Source: Trichosphaerium sp. ATCC 40318
Taxonomy: Eukaryota > Protista > Tubulinea
Direction: 5' to 3'
DNA: 64,000 nucleotides
Assembly (NCBI GenBank): GCA_038496445.1
Contig: JALMLS010000505.1
Span: forward strand, 82,500 to 146,499
Positions 13,527-63,879 of this stretch are shown piece after piece (within the stretch, counting starts at the first letter, position 1; each line of letters begins with the position of its first letter). The position numbers and the translations under genes were made by a program. The notes under the pieces are model-generated. The model did not search any database. It saw only the letters and a list, made by a program, of their open reading frames with translations, and was not told the origin of the DNA.

Positions 13527-14497
13527 TTACAAAATTATACTTAACAGTGCTACAAAAGAAACACAAAACAAAAGATTGATAGAATTCAATTTTTGTGAAG
13601 ATGAACCTGGTGGAGTTACAGGAGATTGTGTTGGAATGGCAGTTGGATCTGCTGTTGGTGCAATTGTTGGCGTTACTGTTGATAGTGATATTGGAAACAC
13701 AGGAGCCAAGTTTGTAGGTGGCATACTTGGAGACACTGTTGTTGGCGTTAGTGTTGTAGGAGCTAACGTGGTAGGGCTTAGATTTGTGGGAGTTTGTGTT
13801 GTTGGTATCATTGGAGGTTGAGTGGTTGGAGGTAGCGTGGTTGGAGGTAAAGTTGTAGGAGGTAAAGTGGTTGGAGGTAGCGTGGTTGGAGCTAACGTTG
13901 TAGGAGGTAGAGTGGTTGGAGGGAGCGTGGTTGGAGGTAGAGTGGTTGGAGCTAACGTTGTAGGAGGTAAAGTGGTTGGAGGTAGCGTGGTTGGTGCTAA
14001 TGTTGTATCTATGTTATATTTCACTACAAATAAACCTGGAGGATGGACTGTTGGTGGTATGTCGAAACTATCAAAAAGGTAAACGCCGGCGTCAAAATTT
14101 GGTAATTGCGCACCCGAATGTTGTTGCATTGAAGAAAGGATTTATGGGAGCATTGGTGAAATTAGAAGAAACCAAAGAGATACCTAAGTTAAAGCGTTAG
14201 TTTAGTGATACCTGTGTTGCCATGACACAAAACAGAGAAGGTAATAATAAAATCAAACTAAAAATACTTCACATATTTATTCTAAAACAGTTTAATGTGT
14301 ATACCTTCAACTATTGATGCCTCCATAACACATCTAACAATAACCGGCAAGCTTGCACTTTGCGCAATACTGGCAACGTGTATGCAACAAGAGCGAGGGC
14401 CAACTTGAGCACTGTACTCTATTGATGCATCGGAAACAATAAAATCAGGGTTGTTTGGTTCCGAAAGAATAGTTTCGTTAGTACTTACACCACGCAT
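13527..14497 (-). CDS. Secreted or surface mucin-like Thr/Pro-rich glycoprotein with hydrophobic C-terminus (GPI-signal-like)
   Basis: Spliced model MRG-STVLKLALALVAYT-CVMEASIVEG-ISLVSSNFTNAPINPFFNATTFG-FDIPP..., then (PTTL[P/A])n, ending SSSQKLNSINLLFCVSFVALLSIIL*. Confidence 0.7.
13815..14005 (-). repeat. 15-bp coding minisatellite encoding PTTL(P/A), about 12 units
   Basis: Repeated gtggttggaggtagc / gttgtaggaggtaaa units. Confidence 0.9.
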
Positions 14498-24558: not shown

Positions 24559-25523
24559 ATGGAACCACACGCTAATGGGATAATTGATGGTGATCACATT
24601 CCAATCGAGATATGGGTTACGGTCCTTAATTTTGTACCTGACAAGTACCTACTACGTGTCGAGCTTGTGTGTACTTTATTTTTGTGTATTTTGAGAGATT
24701 ATTTTGGCTGTAAACCGCCTACTGTTGTTAAAAGAATCAACAGCAAGAAACAGTTGAAAAAACTTCATAAACGAAAGAGTTTTTTTCATTTAAACATATG
24801 CCAAGTTGAGATTAATTACGAAATGAAGGCAAAACACTTTAAGAAATATCTGATTGGAGTGTTTTCTATTCGTTGCATTTATAAATGTGTGAATGAGAAC
24901 TTCGTCAAAGCATTGGCTGGAGTTCATACAATTAACCTTTCTGGTACTAGTGTGACAGATGAAGGTGTCAAAGCACTGGCTGGCGTTCATACTATTGATC
25001 TTTCAAGTGCAAGATATGTTACAGATGAAGGTATCAAAGCATTATCAGGTGTTCATACTATTAATCTGTTTTGTACCAAAGTAAAAGATAGAGGTGTCAT
25101 AGCATTGGCCGGAGTTCATACAATTAATCTTTGTTATACTGCTGTTACAGATACAGGTGTCAAAGTATTAGGTGGAGTTCATACAATTAATCTTTTGGCT
25201 ACTAAAGTTACAGATGAAGGGTCAAAGCATTATCAGGTGTTCATACAATTAATCTCTGTAAAACTGGCGTGACAGACGAAGGTATCATAGCATTGGCTGG
25301 AGTTCATTCAATTAATTTGTCCCAAACAGCAGTGACAAATAGAGGTGTCAGAGCATTATCAGGTGTTCATACAATTATTCTTTCTGGTACTAGTGTGACA
25401 CGTGACGGTATTGAAGCATTGGCTGGAGTACGTAAAGTTGACTTTTCTTATACTCCCTTTTATTATTATGATGGTTTCATTAAGTTAACAAATATTACTC
25501 ATGAATTTCTTTACGAACAATGA
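24559..25523 (+). pseudogene. Intronless F-box + 21/22-aa leucine-rich-repeat gene with a 1-nt frameshift
   Basis: F-box DHIPIEIWVTVLNFVPDKYLLRVELVCTLF and ~9 repeats of VHTINLSGTSVTDEGVKALAG. At 25220, gatgaagg-gtcaaagca lacks the T of the repeat consensus gatgaaggtgtcaaagca, splitting ORFs 24559-25272 and 25269-25523. Confidence 0.8.
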
Positions 25524-47830: not shown

Positions 47831-48092
47831 CATGTGCACATACATATTGGATTTGTGTAAAGAACCAGGGTCGAAGCTGGATTGATGACTTCTCTTTTGA
47901 GCCATAAACAAAGAACTACAATCTCGCGTTCATATCAGCAATTAAAAGACTAAACCGATGTTTTAGTGTATCTTCAGTGCGCCAAAACAAGTTATTGGCT
48001 ATGAATTTTCAACAAGTACACTATATGAGGAAAACTAAACTATGGTTGTTTATTGATAATGATATTGCTTGCTTACAACAAACACATTAGAA

Positions 48093-51000
48093 TTACTTTG
48101 TACTTTCAAGAAGAGCTATTTTTGCCAGTAGAATAGTATTCCTCTCCTTTAGGTTAGTGTTGTCTTGCTTTAGATCTTGGACACTTTCCTTGAGGTTAAC
48201 ATTGTCTTGCTTTAGATCCTGGACACTTTCTTTGAGGTTAGCATTGGCTTGCTTTAGATCCTGGACACTTTCGGTGAGGTTAACATTGGCTTGCTTTAGA
48301 TCTTGGACACTTTCCTTGAGGTTGATATTGTCTAGCTTCAGGGTGTTGTTGCTTCCTGTGAGGTCTTTGACACTTTCTGTTAAGTTGGCTTTGTCTTGTT
48401 TTAGGTTATTGATGCTTTCAGTCAATTCAGTAATGTGCTGTTCTCTATTTGCGTTGGCTTTCTGTGAATTCTGATGAAGTTCAGCCAGGCTCTTCTTTAA
48501 TTTCTCTACCTCACTGTTTGATTGTTGTAATTCCAGTTCGGGATTGACATAATTATAACTTGGTTGTTCATCAGTTGAATCATCATGGGCCGCCCACAGT
48601 TTTCTAGTGCAAAGCCTAAGTTTAAAAGAAAGAGACTATGAAATTATACCGGTTAGAAATAAAAGTGTCATCATCAGAATCAGATAGTTCATCATCAGAT
48701 AGCTCACCAGCGGAACCATCAGTATCTGCTTCTGAAGCTTTGTCCTCAATTTGTTCGTTATCGCCTTTCTCTTTCTTTGTCATTTTATCGTCTTTCTTGG
48801 CTTTTTTAGTTTTACGTCTTTTTTTTGTACATTGTTTCTTTGTAACTTTGATGATGTACCGAGCAACAGCTTGAGTATCTAAAACAGTGTTTGAGTACTT
48901 AATCACAATTTTCTAATGTAATGTTGAGTGTACCTTGTGCCACTACCAGCTCATCGTATACTGCATCTTCAAGTTTATCTGGTTTCAGAAGTTTACCCTT
49001 TCGATCTACCAATGCATAGTGACTTTGGTAGCCTGGTTTTATTGGCCTTCCATGCAAACTTTCATTGATGTTTTTGATACCATCCTTACATACGAGGGGA
49101 TCATGCTTTTTATCAAGTAAGTAAAGAATATTCACATCAATATTATTGTTTGCTTACTGGATAAACGTTGCCAGGAGTAACAAGACTTAAAACAAGTGTT
49201 TTTGCGGTTCTTCCTTTCAAATCATATGAAGCAGCATACTTTATGCTTCTCTATCGGCGACAATGAATATTGACCACCTGCAAAAATTGGCTAGTAACGC
49301 ACAGTGAAGTATATCCCTTGACCATAGTAACCAGCATCTAAAGAACTCACAGTTCCAAAACCAGCCTTTACAATACTGTAAGCTGCATCGTTGTTCGTAC
49401 CATGGACCATTAATATCACTGGTAACTAAATAAAACGTTTGTTAATGCAAGAGTACCAAGTAGCATTACCTTATCTTTCTTGGTAGTACGACAATCATTA
49501 AAGGCAGTGAGGGTGTTGTACTTTTGGTACACAGTCTCTTTGTGTTCCTTGTAGATACTTTTTTTCCACTCTTGTTTTTTAAACAACTCGGGCAGTTCTC
49601 TAATATGTGCATGTTAGAATCAAGAAACATCTACGTGGGATAAACGTACTGGTGTCTGTGTTTTAGTATTTCATTGACCCGACCAAAGTTATCTGTCAAG
49701 ATGTCATTGTAAACAAGACTCGCTTCAACGATATTGTATTTGTCATAGCCGTGTAGCTTTGACATCTCCTGTTTGAGAATGTTGAATTCTCTGACAGCCA
49801 CTTTGTCGTTTTTGTCAAGAAGGTTCAGTATTTTGTAGTGTGTCGCCTTTGCAACAATACCTCTTTTTATAATATAAGAATTAATTAAAAAGGCATTGCC
49901 CATACGTGTTGGAGCTATCCCAATTATTTGCAAAATACAATCGCGGATTCAAACTCCATGCGTTTTCGCCTTGTAATCCTTTTGAAACTGTTTTAGTATT
50001 TTATCACATACACACCTTACCTCCAGTACGCTCTTCTTGTAAGTATTCAACATGTTTGTTATTAACCCACGCATCATTGGGCATATCATACAGAATACCT
50101 TGCATTAATTTCCCATCTTGTTTCCAGAAGTCCTGTAGAAAAAAAGTTGTTTGTAGTGTTGAGTTACCGGTGGATATCGTACTGGAGACAATACAACTTT
50201 GGGATCGCATGTAGAACAAATTAAATAACAAATACCTTTATCCATTGCCAGTTTGAAATAATACCGTGTTGGCTGAAGGTTGTGTGATTAGTTTAAGGTA
50301 TTGGCATTCAATAAAGTGTACCAAACGGCAAAGCCATTCTTCAAACTGTTTTCTCTCTTCTACGTTGACATTTTGTGAATAGTGCTTTATACAGTATCTC
50401 CACAGTGCATGGCATTGTTTACCACCTGGACAGTATTTTAAGAAAGTTATGAATTTTTCAACAGCTGAAGGTGTATTTGATATCACTTTTCTAATTAAAA
50501 TGAACATAAAGTCTTGCCATCTTCTTTTGTCCGGAACTACTGCTAACAGTGTTAGCTATTATTTTACCAAATTGTTTTGTAATGTGCCCAATACCTGAAT
50601 CCTTGCTGGTTCCACCATCAATATCAATATTATTTGTGTTAGGTTTGATTAATTTCAACATTTGCATTGAGATATAGTTAAAATCTCAAAACGATAGTGA
50701 GTAAACACAGGTTTTATCTCTTTTGTTATATTACCTGTAGCATAAATCAAAGCTGTATTTCCATATTCATCAACAGCATCAATATTGGCTTTGGCATTGA
50801 TTAACATTGATACAACTTTATTGTGTCCATTTTTTGCTTTAAATAATAATGTGAGTTTGCACTTGTTACTGTATTTCATCATGATTACCTGCATAAATCA
50901 AAGCTGTACTTCCATAGTTATCAACAGCATCAATATTGGCGTTGGCATTGATTAACATTGATACAAATTCATTGTGTCCATTTTTTGCTTTAAATAATAA

Positions 51001-53629
51001 TGTGAGTATGCATACGTTACTGTATTTCATCATAGTTACCTGCATAAATCAAAACTGTATTTCCATATTTATCAACAGCATCAATATTGGTGTTGGCATT
51101 GATTAACATTGATACAATTGCATTGTGTCTATTTTTTGCTTTAAATAATAATGTGAGTATGCATACGTTACTGTATCTCATCATGATTACCTGCATAAAT
51201 CAAAGCTGTCCTTCTATTTTCATCAACAGCCTTAATATTGGTGTTGGCATTGATTAATGTTGATACAACTTCATTGTGTCCATTTTGTGCTTTAAATAAT
51301 AATGTGAGTATGCACATGTATTTGTATCTCATCACGATTACCTGCATAAATCAAAGCTGTATTTCCATATTTATCAACAGCATCAATATTGGCGTTGGCA
51401 TTGATTAACATTGATACAATTTTATTGTGTCCTTCTTGTGCTTTAAATAATAATGTGAGTATGCACTTGTTACTGTATCTCATCATGATTACCTGCATAA
51501 ATCAAAGCTGTCTTTCTATTTTCATTAGCAGCCTCAATATTGGTGTTGGCATTGATTAACATTGATACAACTTTATTGTGTCCATTTTGTGCTTTAAATA
51601 ATAATGTGAGTATGCACTTGTTACTGTATCTCATCATGATTACCTGCATAAATCAAAGCTGTCCTTCCATATTCATCAACAGCATCAATATTGGCGTTGG
51701 CATTGATTAACATTGATACAACTGCATTGTGTCCTTCCTGCGCTTTAAATAATAATGTGAGTATGCATACGTTACTGTATCTCATCATGATTACCTGCAT
51801 AAATCAAAGCTGTACTTCCATAGTTATCAACAGTATCAATATTGGCGTTGGCATTGATTAACATTGATACAACTTTATTGTGTCCATTTTGTGCTTTAAA
51901 TAATAATGTGAGTATGCACTTGTTACTGTATCTCATCACGATTACCTGCATAAATCAAAGCTGTACTTCCATAGTTATCAACAGTATCAATATTGGCGTT
52001 GGCATTGATTAACATTGATACAACTTTATTGTGTCCATTTTGTGCTTTAAATAATAATGTGAGTATGCACTTGTTACTGTATTTCATCACGATTACCTGC
52101 ATAAATCAAAGCTGTCCTTTTATAGTAATCAACAGCCTCAATATTGGCGTTGGCATTGATTAACATTGATACAAATTCATTGTGTCCATTTTTTGCTTTA
52201 AATAATAATGTGAGTATGCACATGTTATTGTATCTCATCATAGTTACCTGCATAAATTAAAATTGTATTTTTATCTTCATCAATATTGGCTTTGGCATTG
52301 ATTAACATTGATACAACTTCATTATGTCCTTTTTGTGCTTTAAATAATAATGTGAGTTTGCACTTGTTACTGTATTTCATCACGATTACCTGCATAAATC
52401 AAAGCTGTACTTCCATCTTCATCAACAGCATCAATATTGGCGTTGGCATTGATTAACATTGATACAATTTTATTGTGTCCATTTTTTGCTTTAAATAATA
52501 ATGTGAGTATGCACATGTTATCGTATCTCATCACGATTACCTGCATAAATCAAAGCTGTCTTTCTATTTTCATCAACAGCATCAATATTGGCGTTGGCAT
52601 TGATTAACATTGATACAATTTTATTGTATCCATTTTTTGCTTTAAATAATGTGAGTATGCACTTGTTATTGTATCTCATCACGATTACCTGCATAAATCA
52701 AAGCTGTCCTTCCATATTCACCAACAGCATCAATATTGGCGTTGGCATTGATTAACATTGATACAATTTTATTGTGTCCTTTTTTTGCTTTAAATAATAA
52801 TGTGAGTATGCACATGTTATTGTATCTCAACTATTACCTGCATAAATCAAAGCTGTACTTCCATATTCACCAACAGCATCAATATTGGCGTTGGCATTGA
52901 TTAACATTGATACAATTTTATTGTGTCCATTTTTTGCTTTAAATAATAATGTGAGTATGCACATGTTATCGTATCTCATCACGATTACCTGCATAAATCA
53001 AAGCTGTATTACCATATTTGTCAACAGCATCAATATTGGCGTTGGCATTGATTAACATTGATACAATCTCATTGTGCCCATAACGTGCTATAAATAATAG
53101 TGTGAGTATGCACTTGTTACTGTATCTCATCATTATTACCTGCATAAATCAAAGCTGTACTTCCATATTTATCAACAGCATCAATATTGGCGTTGGCATT
53201 GATTAACATTGATACAACTTTATTGTGTCCATTTTTTGCTTTAAATAATAATGTGAGTATGCACATGTTATCGTATCTCATCACGATTACCTGCATAAAT
53301 CAAAGCTGTATTTCCATAGTTACCAACAGCATCAATATTGGCGTTGGCATTGATTAACATTGATACAATTTTATTATCTCCTTTTTGTGCTTTAAATAAT
53401 GTGAGTATGCACTTGTTACCGTATTTCATCATGATTACCTGCATAAATCAAAGCTGTATTTCCATAGTTATCAACAGCATCAATATTGGTGTTGGCATTG
53501 ATTAACATTGATACAACTTTATTGTCTCTATTTTTTGCTTTAAATAATAATGTGAGTATGCACATGTTATTGTATCTCATCATAATTACCTGCATAAATC
53601 AAAGTTACTTCACTTTGTGATTCTGTCAT
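48093..53629 (-). CDS. Ankyrin-array (19 repeats) + PARP-type ADP-ribosyltransferase domain + Lys/acidic linker + C-terminal coiled coil
   Basis: Continuous in-frame splicing traced by eye from ATG 53629 (MTESQSEVTLIYA) through 19 ankyrin exons and linker exons to LPVILMVHGTNNDAAYSIVKAGFGTVSSLDAGYYGQGIYFT/RSIKYAASY..LVLSLVTPGNVYP..GYQSHY..VYDELVVAQ/DTQAVARYII, then (KESVQDLKQDNVNL)n and the stop at 48093. Confidence 0.85.
48140..48420 (-). repeat. 42-bp coding tandem repeat (14-aa, double-heptad coiled coil)
   Basis: About 4 near-identical units tgctttagatc[ct]tggacacttt..gaggtt plus degenerate flanking units, encoding (K/T)ESVQDLKQ(D/A)NxNL. Confidence 0.9.
50735..53604 (-). repeat. Tandem array of ~151-bp units (99-nt ankyrin exon + 52-nt intron): 19 complete units plus 1 partial
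   Basis: acctgcataaatcaaagc recurs at ~50887, 51038, 51189, 51340, 51491, 51642, 51793, 51944, 52095, 52246, 52388, 52539, 52687, 52836, 52987, 53138, 53289, 53437 and 53588. Minus-strand intron consensus gtaatcatgatgagatacagtaacaagtgcatactcacattattatttaaag. Confidence 0.95.
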
Positions 53630-54969
53630 GACGTGTTGTCACTCTTGGGGTTACCACGAAGCAGTATTAAGTCGTTACTTGACACGAGATATTTTTCGGT
53701 GAAGTGTTATTGTAATGTGCGTTTCGGTTCTGGTTCTGTGTTTTTACTATTTGCGGTTCACAGAGTGTTTTTGAAGCCCTAGGAACTGGAATGTACCTCC
53801 GGTCATGTAATAAGGCGATATGGGGACATAGTGAAGATAAACCGGTAACCCGGCAAAACCGTCGGTAGTTTATTTTTTGGGTAGTTTTTTGCCGTATTCA
53901 CAGTTCCACCTGTAGCGCTATCACTCTTTAGAGATTTACCCATTCCATTTACCAGTCCGTGTATATTTACGAAAGACGCGCCACGTACATAAATGAGTTA
54001 AGGAGACACAAACAACTACAAAACTGCATAAGAGATTCAGATACCTTTCGAAAAAAAAGCAGATAATCCAGATTTATTTTTTCTAACCGCGAAAATATCT
54101 GTAACTGAGCCGCTAACCACGTGTTTCATGAAAAAATGTAAAAAACACAATACTATCTTGAATACATGATTCCGATCATTTTAGAGTCCAGAATAGCTAC
54201 TGTACTATATTTTCAACTTTTTTATAGTAGCGGGCTTCTCATCACCTTCTTGCGTTCATTATAGGCGTCAGTAACCATCAAAGCGGTAGTTAATAGACTA
54301 TAAATATACATACCATTGAATAGGTTGATAAAAGCTCTAATACAGCGTAGTAACACTCTTTAACACTAAAAATCGCGAAAGAAGTGCTCATACAGCAAAG
54401 TGCGTATCGAGGGAACCAAATAAAATTGTGGTTATCACATCACATCATTAAACTACCAACACACCACAACAACCAAGCTAAATGTCAAATAAACATTAAC
54501 CAACAACAAAACAAAGAAACGTGTCACTCAAAAGAAGAAACCTGCAAAACCAAAGCCAACGGAGAAACAACTTCGAATGAGAGGAGGATAAAGCCTTGAC
54601 TAAACACCATCTACCTCACTCCGATAGAGACTTGGGAATACAAAAAAGTGTGTAAGAATACAGAAAGAATGATCCTTTATCACAACTTTGCCATTCTTCT
54701 TTAAATCCATCCTGTAAAGTCTCGCACCTGACCAAATATTTTAATAAGATTCTTCTAACGGCAGAGAGATCAGTTGTAGTGTGGGAAGACTAGTAATGGA
54801 GACGACAGGATTTGTAAGCAGCTATTTTTGGTTTCAAATTTAATTTCAAACGAACAACAATGAACAAAGTACACTGGCTATCAAGCATCGCCGGTGCGCT
54901 AGTAGTAGGTGGTGTAGTTGGAGGCATAGTAGTTAGTCTCACCACTTGTTTTTTTACCCTGTGATATAA

Positions 54970-55312
54970 CTAAAGCAGCTTAGAAAGGCCCTTAATAGTC
55001 ACTGCTGTATTGTTTTCACTATTTAAATGTGCTTTAATTAATATTGATATAATCGCACTATTTAGTTTTTGCTGAATAGTAGGTAACCTGTTAGAATTAC
55101 GTTGTGATGTACCTGCACAAAATAAAGCTGTGGTTCCATCTTTATCAACAACATCAATATTTGCATTTGCTTCAATTAGTGTAGACACAGTCACATTTTC
55201 CATGTTTTGCTACAAAATAGTGTAAGCCATAGTGTTACCTGCACAAATTAAAGCTGTATTTCCATCTTGATCAACAGCCTCAACATTGGCATTTGCATCG
55301 AGTAACGTTGAC
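54970..55312 (-). pseudogene. Degenerate one-repeat-per-exon ankyrin exons (relic of a related array)
   Basis: LLDANANVEAVDQDGNTALICA and TVSTLIEANANIDVVDKDGTTALFCA, with the same GCAG|GT phase-1 donors. The second exon is 2 nt short and the third has an early stop. Confidence 0.7.
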
Positions 55313-55739
55313 AACGTGGCGAAAAAACTGATGCGCAAAACAGAAAGTGTTCACTTGTTCATAGTCTTTGACGTTTTCACAATTCCATGTAACGCTTCAA
55401 AGAATTATCCCCTCCATCACTAGCCTCTGTATTTAGAAGTATATGAAGTACATATATAAGAAAAAGGAGAACCAAAAAGAATGAAAGAAGGTACTAGCTG
55501 CTTTCTCAATTGCCGCTATCTGACATTGGTTGGCTAGCCAAAACTGAAATTAGGTGAATAACGAGAATAGTGTATTAGGAATAGACAGGTTTTTTGATAT
55601 AAGCGTGCTCGTTAATTCACGCCATCTACTTATTTTGTATTATCTGGTTGCACCAAAAGTAAGTACTTGTACTGAAAGTAATTTTTTCCTGTGTTAATCC
55701 AGTCGTTCACAATTCTTTGGGCCAAGTATACAAGTGGCG

Positions 55740-56337
55740 AGGAACTAACATGTGTTAAAAAGCCAGAAATTGTATATTGTGTAGATTTTTTGATTTCAAA
55801 AAACACATAAAATGAAAACCTGTGTGGAGAAATTATTTTATTGTCGGATTCTATGCACTCATACAGGTGGCATTAGTGTGCAAAGAATCAGCATCAAAAT
55901 CGGTCCGGTAAGCCAGAAATTTTGACTTTTTTGTCGATTTTTTGCTTCAAAAACGAAGACTTTTTCACCTTCAAAAAAATTGAAAATACACGTATTGACA
56001 TGTTGGTGTACTGTGTAAAAATTCAGAGCTGAACTTGTCCGTGGTTGCCATAAATGTTACCTTTCTTATTTTTTTCTGGAATTTTTTTTGAAGGTGAAAA
56101 AGTCTTCGTTTTTGAAGCAAAAAATCGACAAAAAAGTCAAAATTTCTGGCTTACCGGACCGATTTTGATGCTGATTCTTTGCACACTAATGCCACCTGTA
56201 TGAGTGCATAGAATCCGACAATAAAAATAATTCCTCCGTGCAGATTTTCATAAACACACGTGCGTTTTTTGAGCACTAAAAAAAACTACTGTTGCTTGTG
56301 GAGTAAGTTGGAGTCGCCTTGGTACATGTAAGATCCT
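55740..56337. mobile_element. Foldback / MITE-like non-autonomous element with ~150-bp near-perfect inverted arms
   Basis: Arm ~55831-55981 (aattattttattgtcggattctatgcactcatacaggtggc...ttcaccttcaaaaaaatt) is the reverse complement of ~56080-56232 around a ~98-bp spacer. Weaker symmetry extends to ggaactaacatgt / acatgtaagatcc. Confidence 0.75.
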
Positions 56338-59038: not shown

Positions 59039-59665
59039 TTAGGTGGCATTGCTTTTGGATAAGTTGACAATATCTTTCTTCAGGTTTTTGATGCTTTCTT
59101 TAATGATGGTATTGCTTTCTGTTAATTTGACATTGTCGTCCTTCAAGTCATTGACACATTCTGTCAACTTGATATTGTCTTGCTGTAGGTTGTTGCCACT
59201 TTCTGTTAGGCTGGCATTGTCTCGCTTCAGGTCGGCATTGTTTTCTGCTACTTTTGCTTTCTGTAATTGTATGTCGAGATATACATCATTGCTAGTTGAT
59301 TGCTGGTCATCAGTTGAATCCACATGGGCATCCCATAGTTTTCTAGTACAACAGCGTAAGTTTAAATAAGCAAAAGATGTGACTTCTTACCGGTTGCTAG
59401 TAAACTTGTCATTAGAGTCGGAGAGGTCATCTGTCTTCGGGTTTATTTGTATTTTTTGTTTTTTTCGTTTGGGAATCTTTTGGTACAACTTTAATGATGC
59501 AACGAGCAACAGCTTGATTATCTAAAAGGCGAGTTATAATACAATTTTTGTAATTTCTAGTACCTTGAGCAACAACAAGCTCATCGTACACCGCATGAGA
59601 TACTCTATTTTCTTTGAGAGGTCTACCTAAGCGATCTACCAATATGACTTTGGTAGCCTGTTGTC
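59039..59665 (-). pseudogene. 5'-truncated paralog of the PARP/coiled-coil gene at 48093-53629
   Basis: GYQSH(frameshift)LVDRLGRPLKENRVSHAVYDELVVAQ, NQAVARCIIKV, TRKLWDAHVDSTDDQQ and degenerate 14-aa heptads. Intron positions match the intact copy; no HGT/GIYF part upstream. Confidence 0.8.
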
Positions 59666-59697
59666 CTCTTAACTTCTTTTCTCTTTCTTTACTCCCG

Positions 59698-59792
59698 TAT
59701 CACAACAACAAATTGCCACATTAACAGAAATCGTCACCAGCCTACAATACATTGAGACCAAACTAGCTCAACTTGAAAGTACAAGCAAGTAG
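59698..59792 (+). pseudogene. Inverted C-terminal fragment possibly of the same family
   Basis: Translates SQQQIATLTEIVTSLQYIETKLAQLESTSK*, resembling EQHITELTESINNL...LLAKIALLESTK* of the intact gene. Confidence 0.4.
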
Positions 59793-62363: not shown

Positions 62364-63879
62364 TTAAGGTATCGATTGCTCAAACGCAAAGAAGTTTGTG
62401 GGATCATACAACCTACGTATGCGCTGTAAGCGATCCAAGTTTTCTCCATAGTATGCCTGTGGCCAATCAGGGAAGTTAGGATCAATATAATTAACATAAG
62501 AACCGCTCAAATATGGTACCAGTAGTGTACGCATTTTGTTGACCCAATCAATGTTAGCTTGTTCATCTTGTGGATCATCCCAAATTGCCTTGATCTGGAT
62601 AAGCAATACGCTGTCTCTATGATAAAATGCTGTTGCGTTTGAAGAGATTCTAGATATTGCTCCACCTCCCACGTGAAACAGCACAAGATTTCTAGGATTA
62701 GGAAAAGATTCAAGCGAATTCATTAGCATGTCTACTAGATCAAGATTGAATGCTCCAGGTTTGAGGAAACCAGAAGTCAAGTATAAATAACCTCTTTGAG
62801 CAGACGTTACATTTGTGTTTTTAACTGACCAGTCATTGAACCTTTGAGGTTTTAATGTATTCAGTTCGAGATCATCACTGAGGTCAATGAGTGATTTAAG
62901 CACATTGTTTTCAGAGCACGTGGATGGATTGTTATTGCATATAACAGTCACACAGAATAGCCTCGCCTTGTTTTTACCAAAAGGAAGCCAAACTGGATCT
63001 ATATCTATCCAATCCGGCAATGTATCTATACCTTCTAACCATATACTCCATGCTTGTCTTACAACAGAAGAAAATGGTTGCCAGCATACTTCTCCCATTA
63101 GCATTTGGTCGGTATATTCATTATCGTTTGAGCCACTACTGACTGCGGTTGGTACATTGTACGGCTTGTGAAGCTGTAAAACAAAGGATAAAGCAATACC
63201 AAAAAGTATAATCTCCTCCGCCTCTTGACGCCCAAAACAATTCAACATTTTCATTTTATGATGCTTTTACTACAGTTCCATTTGCAAGCATAAACGTGAC
63301 CTAAGCACATTGTCAGATCCAAGTCCATAACTGCGCGATAGAAAAGACCATCCGCCACCTAGCAGAAACCCAGCCACACCAACTAAAGGGCATCCACCGC
63401 CAAGAGCTACCCAAGTATTTTGAAGACGACGATAAATGTCGTTCCAACGAACACCAGCGCCCACGCGCATCGTACCGTTTTCGTAAAGCACTATATCGTT
63501 AAAGTATGTACGAAGTTGTAGGACTACGCCACCATCATTTAAACTGTATCTACGGCTTGTTAACATTTGAAGAACGGTGTTTTCTCACTAACCCTTCTGC
63601 GGAATGACCTCCACTTAGCGTTGAGAACGTAGTGTTACAATATTGTACAGCGCTTAGCACTGCGGATACCGCATCAAAGTCCTCTGGAGATATAACTAAT
63701 GCTGGTGCCTTTTGCGCGAGCGCATTGTCTATTTGAACGGCGTTTTTATAAATGACAGTACCAGGGTACGAAATTGCGCCTGTCCAATCATCATTCGCGT
63801 TCAGTTGATCAGTAACACAACTGCACGTGACCTTATATGAGTATAGTAATAGTAGGGATAAGAGCAACCCTTTTAGCAT
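62364..63879 (-). pseudogene. Secreted FAD-linked oxidase (berberine bridge enzyme-like; FAD_binding_4 + BBE), disrupted
   Basis: Signal peptide, SGGHSAEG/Y (one intron), [43 protein letters not shown] and YVNYIDP..WPQAYYGENLDRLQRIRRLYDPTNFF. Frameshift at ~63303, in-frame TAA at ~63257 and a second frameshift at ~63203. Confidence 0.85.

Follow-up and report, generated by a model that had tools for sequence, protein, structure and literature searches.

A spliced Trichosphaerium gene that joins nineteen ankyrin repeats to a PARP-type ADP-ribosyltransferase domain and a leucine zipper

We analysed a stretch of 64,000 nucleotides from the genome of the tubulinean protist Trichosphaerium sp. ATCC 40318 (contig JALMLS010000505.1, positions 82,500 to 146,499), which we call the window. 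Its GC content of about 36% and its short introns agree with what is published for the Trichosphaerium genome. On its minus strand, between positions 48093 and 53629, lies a gene that fuses an array of 19 ankyrin (ANK) repeats to a PARP-type ADP-ribosyltransferase (ART) domain and a C-terminal coiled coil. The fusion is real, and the gene is intact and spliced. Its product is probably a cytosolic or nuclear enzyme that is not an ortholog of tankyrase and that works by a tankyrase-like logic, in which a target is recruited and ADP-ribosylated within an oligomer held by the zipper. New in this gene are the catalytic clade, the leucine zipper in the place of a SAM domain, and the symmetric array of single-repeat exons.

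Gene structure and catalytic domain

The coding frame is complete from an ATG at 53629, preceded by an in-frame TGA 12 nt further 5′, to a TAA at 48095–48093. It encodes 1,324 aa in 32 exons, which are separated by 31 canonical GT-AG introns of 33–55 nt. The model was extended in the 3′ direction by demanding GT-AG introns and an open frame. An earlier version with 31 exons and a 160-nt intron was dropped because the homologs contain an 82-nt exon at 49987–49906, which was therefore added. The parts of the gene are, in the order of transcription:

53590–53629, minus strand: exon 1, with the ATG and an N-terminal cap, and half an ankyrin repeat at its end (..TLIYA)
50735–53537, minus strand: 19 ankyrin-repeat exons, 17 of 99 nt, one of 90 nt and one of 102 nt, with an intron of 49–52 nt after each
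50595–50684, minus strand: short linker exon 3′ of the array, modelled by frame-preserving GT-AG introns and covered by no homolog
49906–50539, minus strand: middle region, four exons, about 190 aa, colinear with residues 1–170 of the homolog P0001 and predicted to be helical
48840–49862, minus strand: PARP-type ART domain, six exons, identified by Pfam PARP, homologs, a family profile, and structure prediction and Foldseek for residues 150–425 of P0001
49862–49650, 49599–49470 and 49425–49303, minus strand: first three ART exons of the gene model, the last with the His and Tyr motifs
49250–49158, 49105–48934 and the start of 48878–48650, minus strand: remaining ART exons of the gene model, with the Glu motif in 49105–48934
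48650–48840, minus strand: Lys/Arg-rich tract resembling a nuclear localisation signal (NLS), then an Asp/Ser-rich tract, read from the translation; an R-x-L-W motif follows past the next intron
48096–48603, minus strand: last exon, leucine-zipper coiled coil, identified by tandem repeats, coiled-coil Pfam matches and heptad layout
48049–48054, minus strand: AATAAA, 39 nt past the stop codon

A sequence-only reading of the window had proposed one open spliced frame that runs from 19 ankyrin repeats through a PARP domain into a coiled coil. The 32-exon model bears this out, as does its colinearity with P0001. Residues 676–1324 of the spliced model align with this 590-aa protein over 663 columns at 50.5% identity (E = 0), and the alignment with a second homolog, P0002 (450 aa), reaches 53% identity (E = 4e-150). 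P0001 is an uninterrupted, intron-free open reading frame (ORF) on a 2.6-kb contig of the Joint Genome Institute (JGI), L001. Its colinearity thus confirms how the exons of the middle region, the PARP domain and the coiled coil are joined, and the four middle-region exons match its residues 1–170 in order, at 44–63% identity per exon. Directly upstream of P0001 on the same contig there is an ankyrin ORF of the same repeat type (Ank_2, 3e-38), and only a frame-breaking 10-N scaffold gap parts the two. In P0008 and P0014, which are more distantly related, a single ORF encodes both ankyrin repeats and the PARP type of the window gene. The junction between the ankyrin array and the PARP domain is thus supported in relatives.

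The RNA evidence consisted of low-depth assembled Logan contigs from one run holding 18% of the sampled words. In these contigs the intron 50182–50133 was spliced exactly as modelled, and the acceptor at 49105 was used. One contig that ends with sequencing adapter at 53647 marks a possible 5′ end, and together with another that covers 48261–48058 it brackets the model. RNA contigs also covered the region of the exon with the catalytic His, hereafter the H exon (bin 49182–49378). Exon-exon joints were found at modelled ankyrin boundaries, namely 52989/50836 and 51644/53087. Read literally, 52989 to 50836 and 51644 to 53087 would be combinatorial exon skipping or back-splicing; we rejected this interpretation, since near-identical units have junction 31-mers in common, which lets a de Bruijn assembler jump from one unit to another. 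The joints therefore show only that the ankyrin exons are spliced. One RNA contig matches the 5′ end of the gene down to 53616 and then runs into unrelated sequence, which points to a paralog whose promoter and first exon are nearly the same.

The motifs on which the sequence-only reading had relied were found where it placed them, with VHGT at 49407–49396, GYYGQGIYFT in the same exon, KYAASY in the exon 49250–49158 and YDELVV at 48961–48944. We built a family profile from 42 sequences, window exons included, and searched it against the PDB. The profile matched PARP13/ZAP (1.2e-12), PARP12 (7e-11) and PARP10 (6e-10), and more weakly tankyrase (1.5e-6), PARP4 (3e-6) and PARP1 (about 1e-5). HGT, GIYF and ELVV are conserved in the family alignment and align to the canonical His-Tyr-Glu columns of PARP12 and PARP13. 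The claimed H-Y-E triad is thus present, with VHGT, GIYF and DELVV at these columns. Both full homologs passed the cut-off of Pfam PARP (PF00644), P0001 with 30.9 bits and P0002 with 36.5 bits.

Structure prediction gave the same assignment. The AlphaFold2 model of residues 150–425 of P0001, computed from the family alignment, has an ART fold, with a predicted local distance difference test score (pLDDT) of 86 and a predicted template modelling score of 0.86. A Foldseek search of the PDB with this model returned at least 380 matches at E ≤ 1e-3, and the top 50 listed were all PARP ART domains. The top matches among Swiss-Prot models, AlphaFold Database clusters and the ESM Atlas were likewise all PARP ART domains. 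Tankyrase was placed first by Foldseek, with a negligible margin. The catalytic exons of P0001 are 58–90% identical to those of the window. Pfam searches of the exons and of P0001 and P0002 found no SAM, WGR, PRD, WWE, macro or zinc-finger domain, and no NACHT/NB-ARC NTPase was found by Pfam in any exon or homolog. When the PDB was searched by sequence with the 41-aa H exon, all matches (TAL effector, UHRF1) were spurious and driven by repeats, and they were discarded.

The middle region of about 190 aa matched no Pfam family, and its ESM Atlas features scored at most 0.66. We considered a UBR-box or zinc-finger reading of this region and rejected it, as most of the Cys and His residues are not conserved in P0001 and there is no Pfam match. 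After the last ART strand the tail runs through the Lys/Arg-rich tract, the Asp/Ser-rich tract and R-x-L-W to the zipper, an order that is common to P0001, P0002, P0026, P0028 and P0018. About 14 heptads make up the zipper; their d positions are all Leu, and their a positions alternate between Val and Asn. Tandem Repeats Finder (TRF) detected within it a 42-bp (14-aa) repeat of 4.6 copies at 48145–48338, and together with the heptad layout this confirms the coiled coil of 14-aa repeats that had been read from the sequence. The C-terminal end of the zipper (..ILLAKIA.LE..) is conserved in P0001, P0002 and P0028. It is reasonable to infer from these features that the zipper may mediate self-association and that the basic tract may direct nuclear import.

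Relatives of the catalytic domain

Relatives of the catalytic domain were sought in several collections. The 69-aa catalytic exon searched against 1.84 billion representative proteins gave three matches, two of which were specific (P0001 and P0002). Word-indexed searches gave 7 relatives at first and 41 in a second round; their sources were metagenomes, transcriptomes or Logan data, and none bears a functional name. P0028, from Trichosphaerium sp. MMETSP0405 (54% identity), is the only named relative. When JGI metagenome contigs were scanned by motif, 149 relatives came up, and 80 of them were retrieved. The motifs of the clade are (H/Q)GT, GYYGQGIYFT, PGN.FPV, PGYQSHY and DELVV. It is an unnamed and environmentally widespread clade of eukaryotic PARP domains, and the database matches include no member that has been named or characterised.

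The architectures in front of the ART domain vary widely. EGF/CUB/FN2 ectodomains with one transmembrane (TM) helix about 170 aa before HGT were found in L017, L028, L023 and L024, and shorter TM forms in L007–L015. The COR-B part of Roc-COR precedes the domain in L018, and leucine-rich repeats (LRR) precede it in L032 and L052. These varied N-terminal architectures indicate that the ART clade provides a C-terminal output and that the binding or sensing modules in front of it are interchangeable. A layout of sensor plus output, which had been proposed for the window gene, fits the clade at large, where the ART domain follows LRR, Roc-COR, EGF/CUB plus TM, and ANK modules.

A receptor-like layout, with a signal or TM segment, an EGF, CUB, FN2 or LRR ectodomain, a single TM helix and the ART domain, was seen in L007–L009, L011–L013, L015, L017, L023, L024, L027, L028 and L032 as well as in P0005 and P0021. 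To our knowledge, no receptor with a cytoplasmic PARP domain has been described. A Gln replaces the His of the triad (..QGT..) in L018, L020, L025, L029, L031, L037 and L038 and in P0004, P0006 and P0007; L018 pairs this variant with Roc-COR (COR-B).

In a maximum-likelihood tree of 70 domains the window sequence grouped with P0002, P0001, P0026 and P0028 (support 100/99). This group was sister to one clade that holds all TM-receptor forms (97/90), and ankyrin-bearing members stood at three places in the tree. ANK-like high-scoring segment pairs (HSPs) were present at 22 of the 80 metagenome loci, at 20 of them on the strand of the ART match and usually upstream. In the metagenome Ga0209960 (L049–L082), more than 12 contigs had ANK-like HSPs 2–5 kb upstream of the ART exon on the same strand, and some contigs (L064, L082) carried two ART copies each. 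TRF on L060, L070 and L073 revealed intron-free ankyrin arrays with 102-bp units, up to about 23 units long and 74–80% identical. The sequences of this metagenome are about 35% identical to the window and thus come from another organism, an AT-rich eukaryote. The ANK-array versions are thus multi-copy in at least one other lineage.

Variation within the ankyrin array

TRF described the array as a 151-bp unit in 19.1 copies at 50740–53611, with 89% matches. Each unit consists of a 99-bp phase-1/phase-1 exon, which encodes one 33-aa ankyrin repeat, and a GT..AG intron of 49–52 nt. Two repeats depart from this length, one with 30 aa and the last one with 34 aa. The introns of the array begin with GTAA.., carry a conserved ACTCAC near the 3′ end and end in ..TTAAAG at the acceptor. 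Single ankyrin exons matched Pfam Ank_4, Ank and Ank_2 with E values from 8e-7 to 2e-4. Being symmetric, these exons can be duplicated, lost and converted with the frame kept.

The units are 91% identical, and pairs of them differ at 4–23 of 151 nt. Amino-acid variation clusters at codons 2, 3, 7, 8 and 23–27, with 2–5 residue types each, and the remaining 24 codons of the repeat are nearly fixed. The variable codons correspond to the ankyrin binding face, as established for designed ankyrin proteins. Neighbouring units are no closer to each other than distant ones, and the exon and intron distances between units are uncorrelated (r = -0.15), which indicates that short-tract conversion shuffles a limited set of variants.

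Selection was assessed by comparing the paralogous repeats of this one array. Pairwise Nei-Gojobori estimates over whole repeats gave nonsynonymous (pN) and synonymous (pS) differences of 0.104 and 0.044, respectively, a pN/pS of 2.4. The pN was 0.27 at the nine variable codons versus 0.036 at the framework codons, and intron diversity was 0.084. When distinct variants were counted, 32 nonsynonymous variants fell on 78.3 sites (0.41 per site) versus 7 synonymous variants on 20.7 sites (0.34 per site; binomial p = 0.41), and every synonymous variant was a singleton. The pN/pS excess is a frequency effect. The introns are equally patchy, as their 15 variants all lie within about a quarter of the sites, and this top quarter is as diverse as the variable codons. 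The term hypervariable, which had been applied to the array, is thus too strong, given the absence of a nonsynonymous excess, the patchiness of the introns and the 91% identity of the units. The variation fits a homogenised framework with a binding face under selection that is either relaxed or diversifying, and the data favour neither of the two.

Possible role of the protein and its surroundings

Among known proteins, tankyrases 1 and 2 (PARP5a/b, clade 4) share with the window protein the N-terminal ankyrins, the C-terminal PARP domain with H-Y-E and a self-association module, as well as the logic of substrate recruitment by ankyrins followed by ADP-ribosylation. Their catalytic domain is also among the top Foldseek matches. 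They differ in that they carry SAM where the window protein has a C-terminal leucine zipper for putative self-association, and in that their ankyrins form five ancient ankyrin repeat clusters (ARC), whereas ours form a single uniform array of near-identical repeats. Furthermore, the family profile scores PARP13/12/10 above tankyrase (1e-12 vs 1.5e-6). With no SAM domain found and a profile closest to PARP13/12/10, the earlier claim that the gene is not a tankyrase ortholog is supported.

Ankyrin repeats are known to have been gained by PARPs on at least two independent occasions (Citarelli et al. 2010, PMC2964712), and clade 1A comprises ankyrin-WGR-PRD-PARP proteins from Dictyostelium, fungi and ciliates (PMC2964712). 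The window gene resembles these in that protist PARPs gained ankyrins independently of tankyrase. Unlike clade 1A, which has WGR and PRD and a PARP1-like catalytic domain, it has no detected WGR or PRD, and its family profile matches PARP1 at about 1e-5. By sequence it would be a further independent ANK-PARP fusion. The sequence-only reading had not recognised the arrangement as a described one, which is only partly right. ANK-PARP fusions as such are known (PMC2964712), and what is novel is the zipper tail together with the catalytic clade. Families of PARP or ankyrin proteins find no mention in the published description of the Trichosphaerium genome (PMC10521059).

The PARP12/PARP13(ZAP)/PARP10/PARP7 group includes the nearest solved ART relatives by profile and is among the top structural matches. 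Its members carry CCCH zinc fingers, WWE or macro domains, none of which is found here, and identity is about 15–20%. The triad is H-Y-E in the window family versus H-Y-I/L in PARP12/10, and PARP13 is inactive. An analogy, and only that, can be drawn to the nucleotide-binding leucine-rich-repeat receptors (NLRs) of plants and animals and to the variable lymphocyte receptors (VLRs) of lampreys, which also have a solenoid with a variable binding face, an enzymatic or signalling output, family expansion and pseudogene clustering. In contrast to these systems, the window gene has neither a STAND NTPase nor somatic assembly, and positive selection is not demonstrated for it.

From these features we infer catalysis, target recruitment, oligomerisation, localisation and a biological role. 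In the proposed mechanism the solenoid of 19 ankyrin repeats would present a concave surface that binds one or more protein partners, and the helical linker region would tie the array to the ART domain with its full His-Tyr-Glu set. The basic tract would probably direct nuclear import, and the C-terminal leucine zipper would pair or bundle molecules. In the zipper-bound oligomer the ART domain would use nicotinamide adenine dinucleotide (NAD+) to ADP-ribosylate the target recruited by the array, or itself. The array itself would grow and reshuffle by unit duplication and short-tract gene conversion.

Several observations weigh against this proposal. Among the RNA contigs, no single record spans the ankyrin and PARP exons. 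One mismatch-free contig joins the donor at 49650 to the acceptor at 49105; this joint, a real splice product, leaves out the three exons (346 nt) that encode the His and Tyr motifs and changes the reading frame, so that at least some transcripts are non-catalytic. The form could be an unproductive or a regulatory isoform. On the window's H exon alone Pfam PARP scored 18.5 bits (E = 0.0015) against a cut-off of 26.7, and it is via the model of the close homolog P0001 that the ART fold of the window domain is supported. The AlphaFold2 prediction for the middle region is helical with a pLDDT of 48, and its fold is not interpretable. Finally, the H-Y-E triad neither proves activity nor separates mono- from poly-ADP-ribosylation.

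Two roles for such an enzyme can be set against each other. It may be a housekeeping or regulatory scaffold enzyme, an analogue of tankyrase with endogenous partners, whose repeats would look young only through continual homogenisation by unequal crossing-over and gene conversion; we regard this as possible, if somewhat doubtful. Its ANK, PARP and self-association modules reproduce the layout of tankyrase, a zipper taking the place of SAM, and constraint on a shared cellular function is indicated by the NLS-like tract, R-x-L-W and zipper end, which are kept in paralogs of about 50% identity. The framework codons are likewise constrained (pN 0.036), and the repeats of the homolog L001 are of the same type, older and more divergent. 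An apparent multi-copy family with tandem clustering and pseudogene debris would, however, be atypical of a housekeeping regulator, and no orthologs in model amoebozoan proteomes were detected among the database matches, which all come from metagenome or transcriptome sources. The gene may instead belong to a fast-diversifying family of innate-immunity or conflict receptors, in which diversifying selection would adapt the ankyrin face to ligands from viruses or bacteria and recognition would trigger an output that ADP-ribosylates or consumes NAD+; this seems to us rather unlikely. This explanation draws on the concentration of repeat differences at the binding-face codons, on the pN/pS of 2.4 and the pN of 0.27 at these codons vs 0.084 in introns, on the shuffling of variants among units and on the decayed paralog pieces that adjoin the gene. 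It is also in line with the more than 12 ANK-array plus ART loci in the metagenome contigs of the second organism, with the occurrence of the ART clade behind LRR, Roc-COR and receptor ectodomains, and with the nearest solved PARPs by sequence being the antiviral PARP13/12 group. Yet a count of distinct changes shows no nonsynonymous excess (0.41 vs 0.34 per site, p = 0.41), intron diversity in the top quarter of sites matches that at the chosen codons, and the pattern is the one to be expected if purifying selection acted on nothing but the ankyrin framework. Each variable position holds just 2–5 residue types, a STAND NTPase was not found, and the basic tract and zipper would suit a nuclear regulator just as well as a receptor.

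Two further explanations question the function or the origin of the gene. It could be a decaying or non-functional product of recent amplification, its open frame a young relic and its transcripts unproductive. All 32 of its 32 exons are open, though, the 31 GT-AG introns are intact, the catalytic and family-invariant residues are all kept and the framework codons are constrained, and RNA contigs reach the H exon region. We therefore consider decay very unlikely, even though the sole cleanly resolved splice joint of the PARP region omits catalytic exons and shifts the frame, the neighbouring copies are dead and the RNA depth is very low. As for origin, giant viruses encode many ankyrin-repeat proteins, and this would favour a recent acquisition from such a virus. 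The nearest named relative, P0028, moreover comes from Trichosphaerium, whose genome is reported to contain about 1,581 gene models of giant-virus origin (PMC10521059). We reject this origin as improbable in the extreme, as the gene has 31 spliceosomal introns of host-like size with a host-like branch-site motif, the family motifs, when sought in 2.9 million viral contigs, gave one weak, partial and generic PARP match, and the clade is broad among environmental eukaryote contigs.

An enzyme of tankyrase-like logic thus remains our preferred reading, and its relatives bear on its wider meaning. Those with LRR, Roc-COR and TM ectodomains suggest ADP-ribosylation as a receptor output in protists. 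If true, signalling or defence proteins of a new class would come into view, along with a natural case of target recognition by a repeat array coupled to an enzyme. We also put forward, as a distinctly speculative and improbable extension, that the PGYQSHY clade is a hitherto unrecognised eukaryotic receptor-output ART domain and that the ankyrin-array subfamily, with its clustering and gene conversion, is its intracellular pathogen-recognition arm in amoeboid protists. Single-pass receptors with EGF/CUB/LRR ectodomains, Roc-COR proteins and long ankyrin arrays would then all signal via a cytoplasmic ADP-ribosyltransferase, which would be a PARP-based counterpart of NLR or TIR systems.

Two groups of gene remnants lie near the gene in the window:

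59040–59700, minus strand: decayed 3′ paralog fragment with the Glu-motif exon, the tail and the coiled coil; tblastn identity 36–49%
54970–55338, minus strand: two divergent ankyrin exon remnants, mutually out of frame; tblastn identity 41–49% and weak Pfam Ank_4 matches

In the 59040–59700 fragment the PGYQSHY motif is replaced, and there are neither intact exons with the His and Tyr motifs nor an upstream ankyrin array. The dead paralogs that the sequence-only reading had reported are thus only partly confirmed, by the 3′ fragment at 59700–59040 and the ankyrin remnants at 55338–54970. Between the ankyrin remnants and the paralog fragment, a foldback element at 55829–56233 consists of two 151-nt arms that are 98% complementary and a 103-nt loop. 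It looks like a miniature inverted-repeat transposable element or a hairpin element.

Three other coding regions of the window were noted. A 237-aa ORF at 24559–25272 on the plus strand contains tandem leucine-rich repeats of the type GVHTINL..T.VTDEGVKALAG. On the minus strand, a 200-aa ORF at 13527–14129 with Pro/Thr repeats (TTLPP/TTLAP) and a hydrophobic C-terminal end resembles a mucin-like surface protein. A long exon at 62364–63254, also on the minus strand, encodes part of a berberine-bridge-enzyme-like flavin adenine dinucleotide oxidase (relatives of PF08031/PF01565), with a best database identity of 52%.

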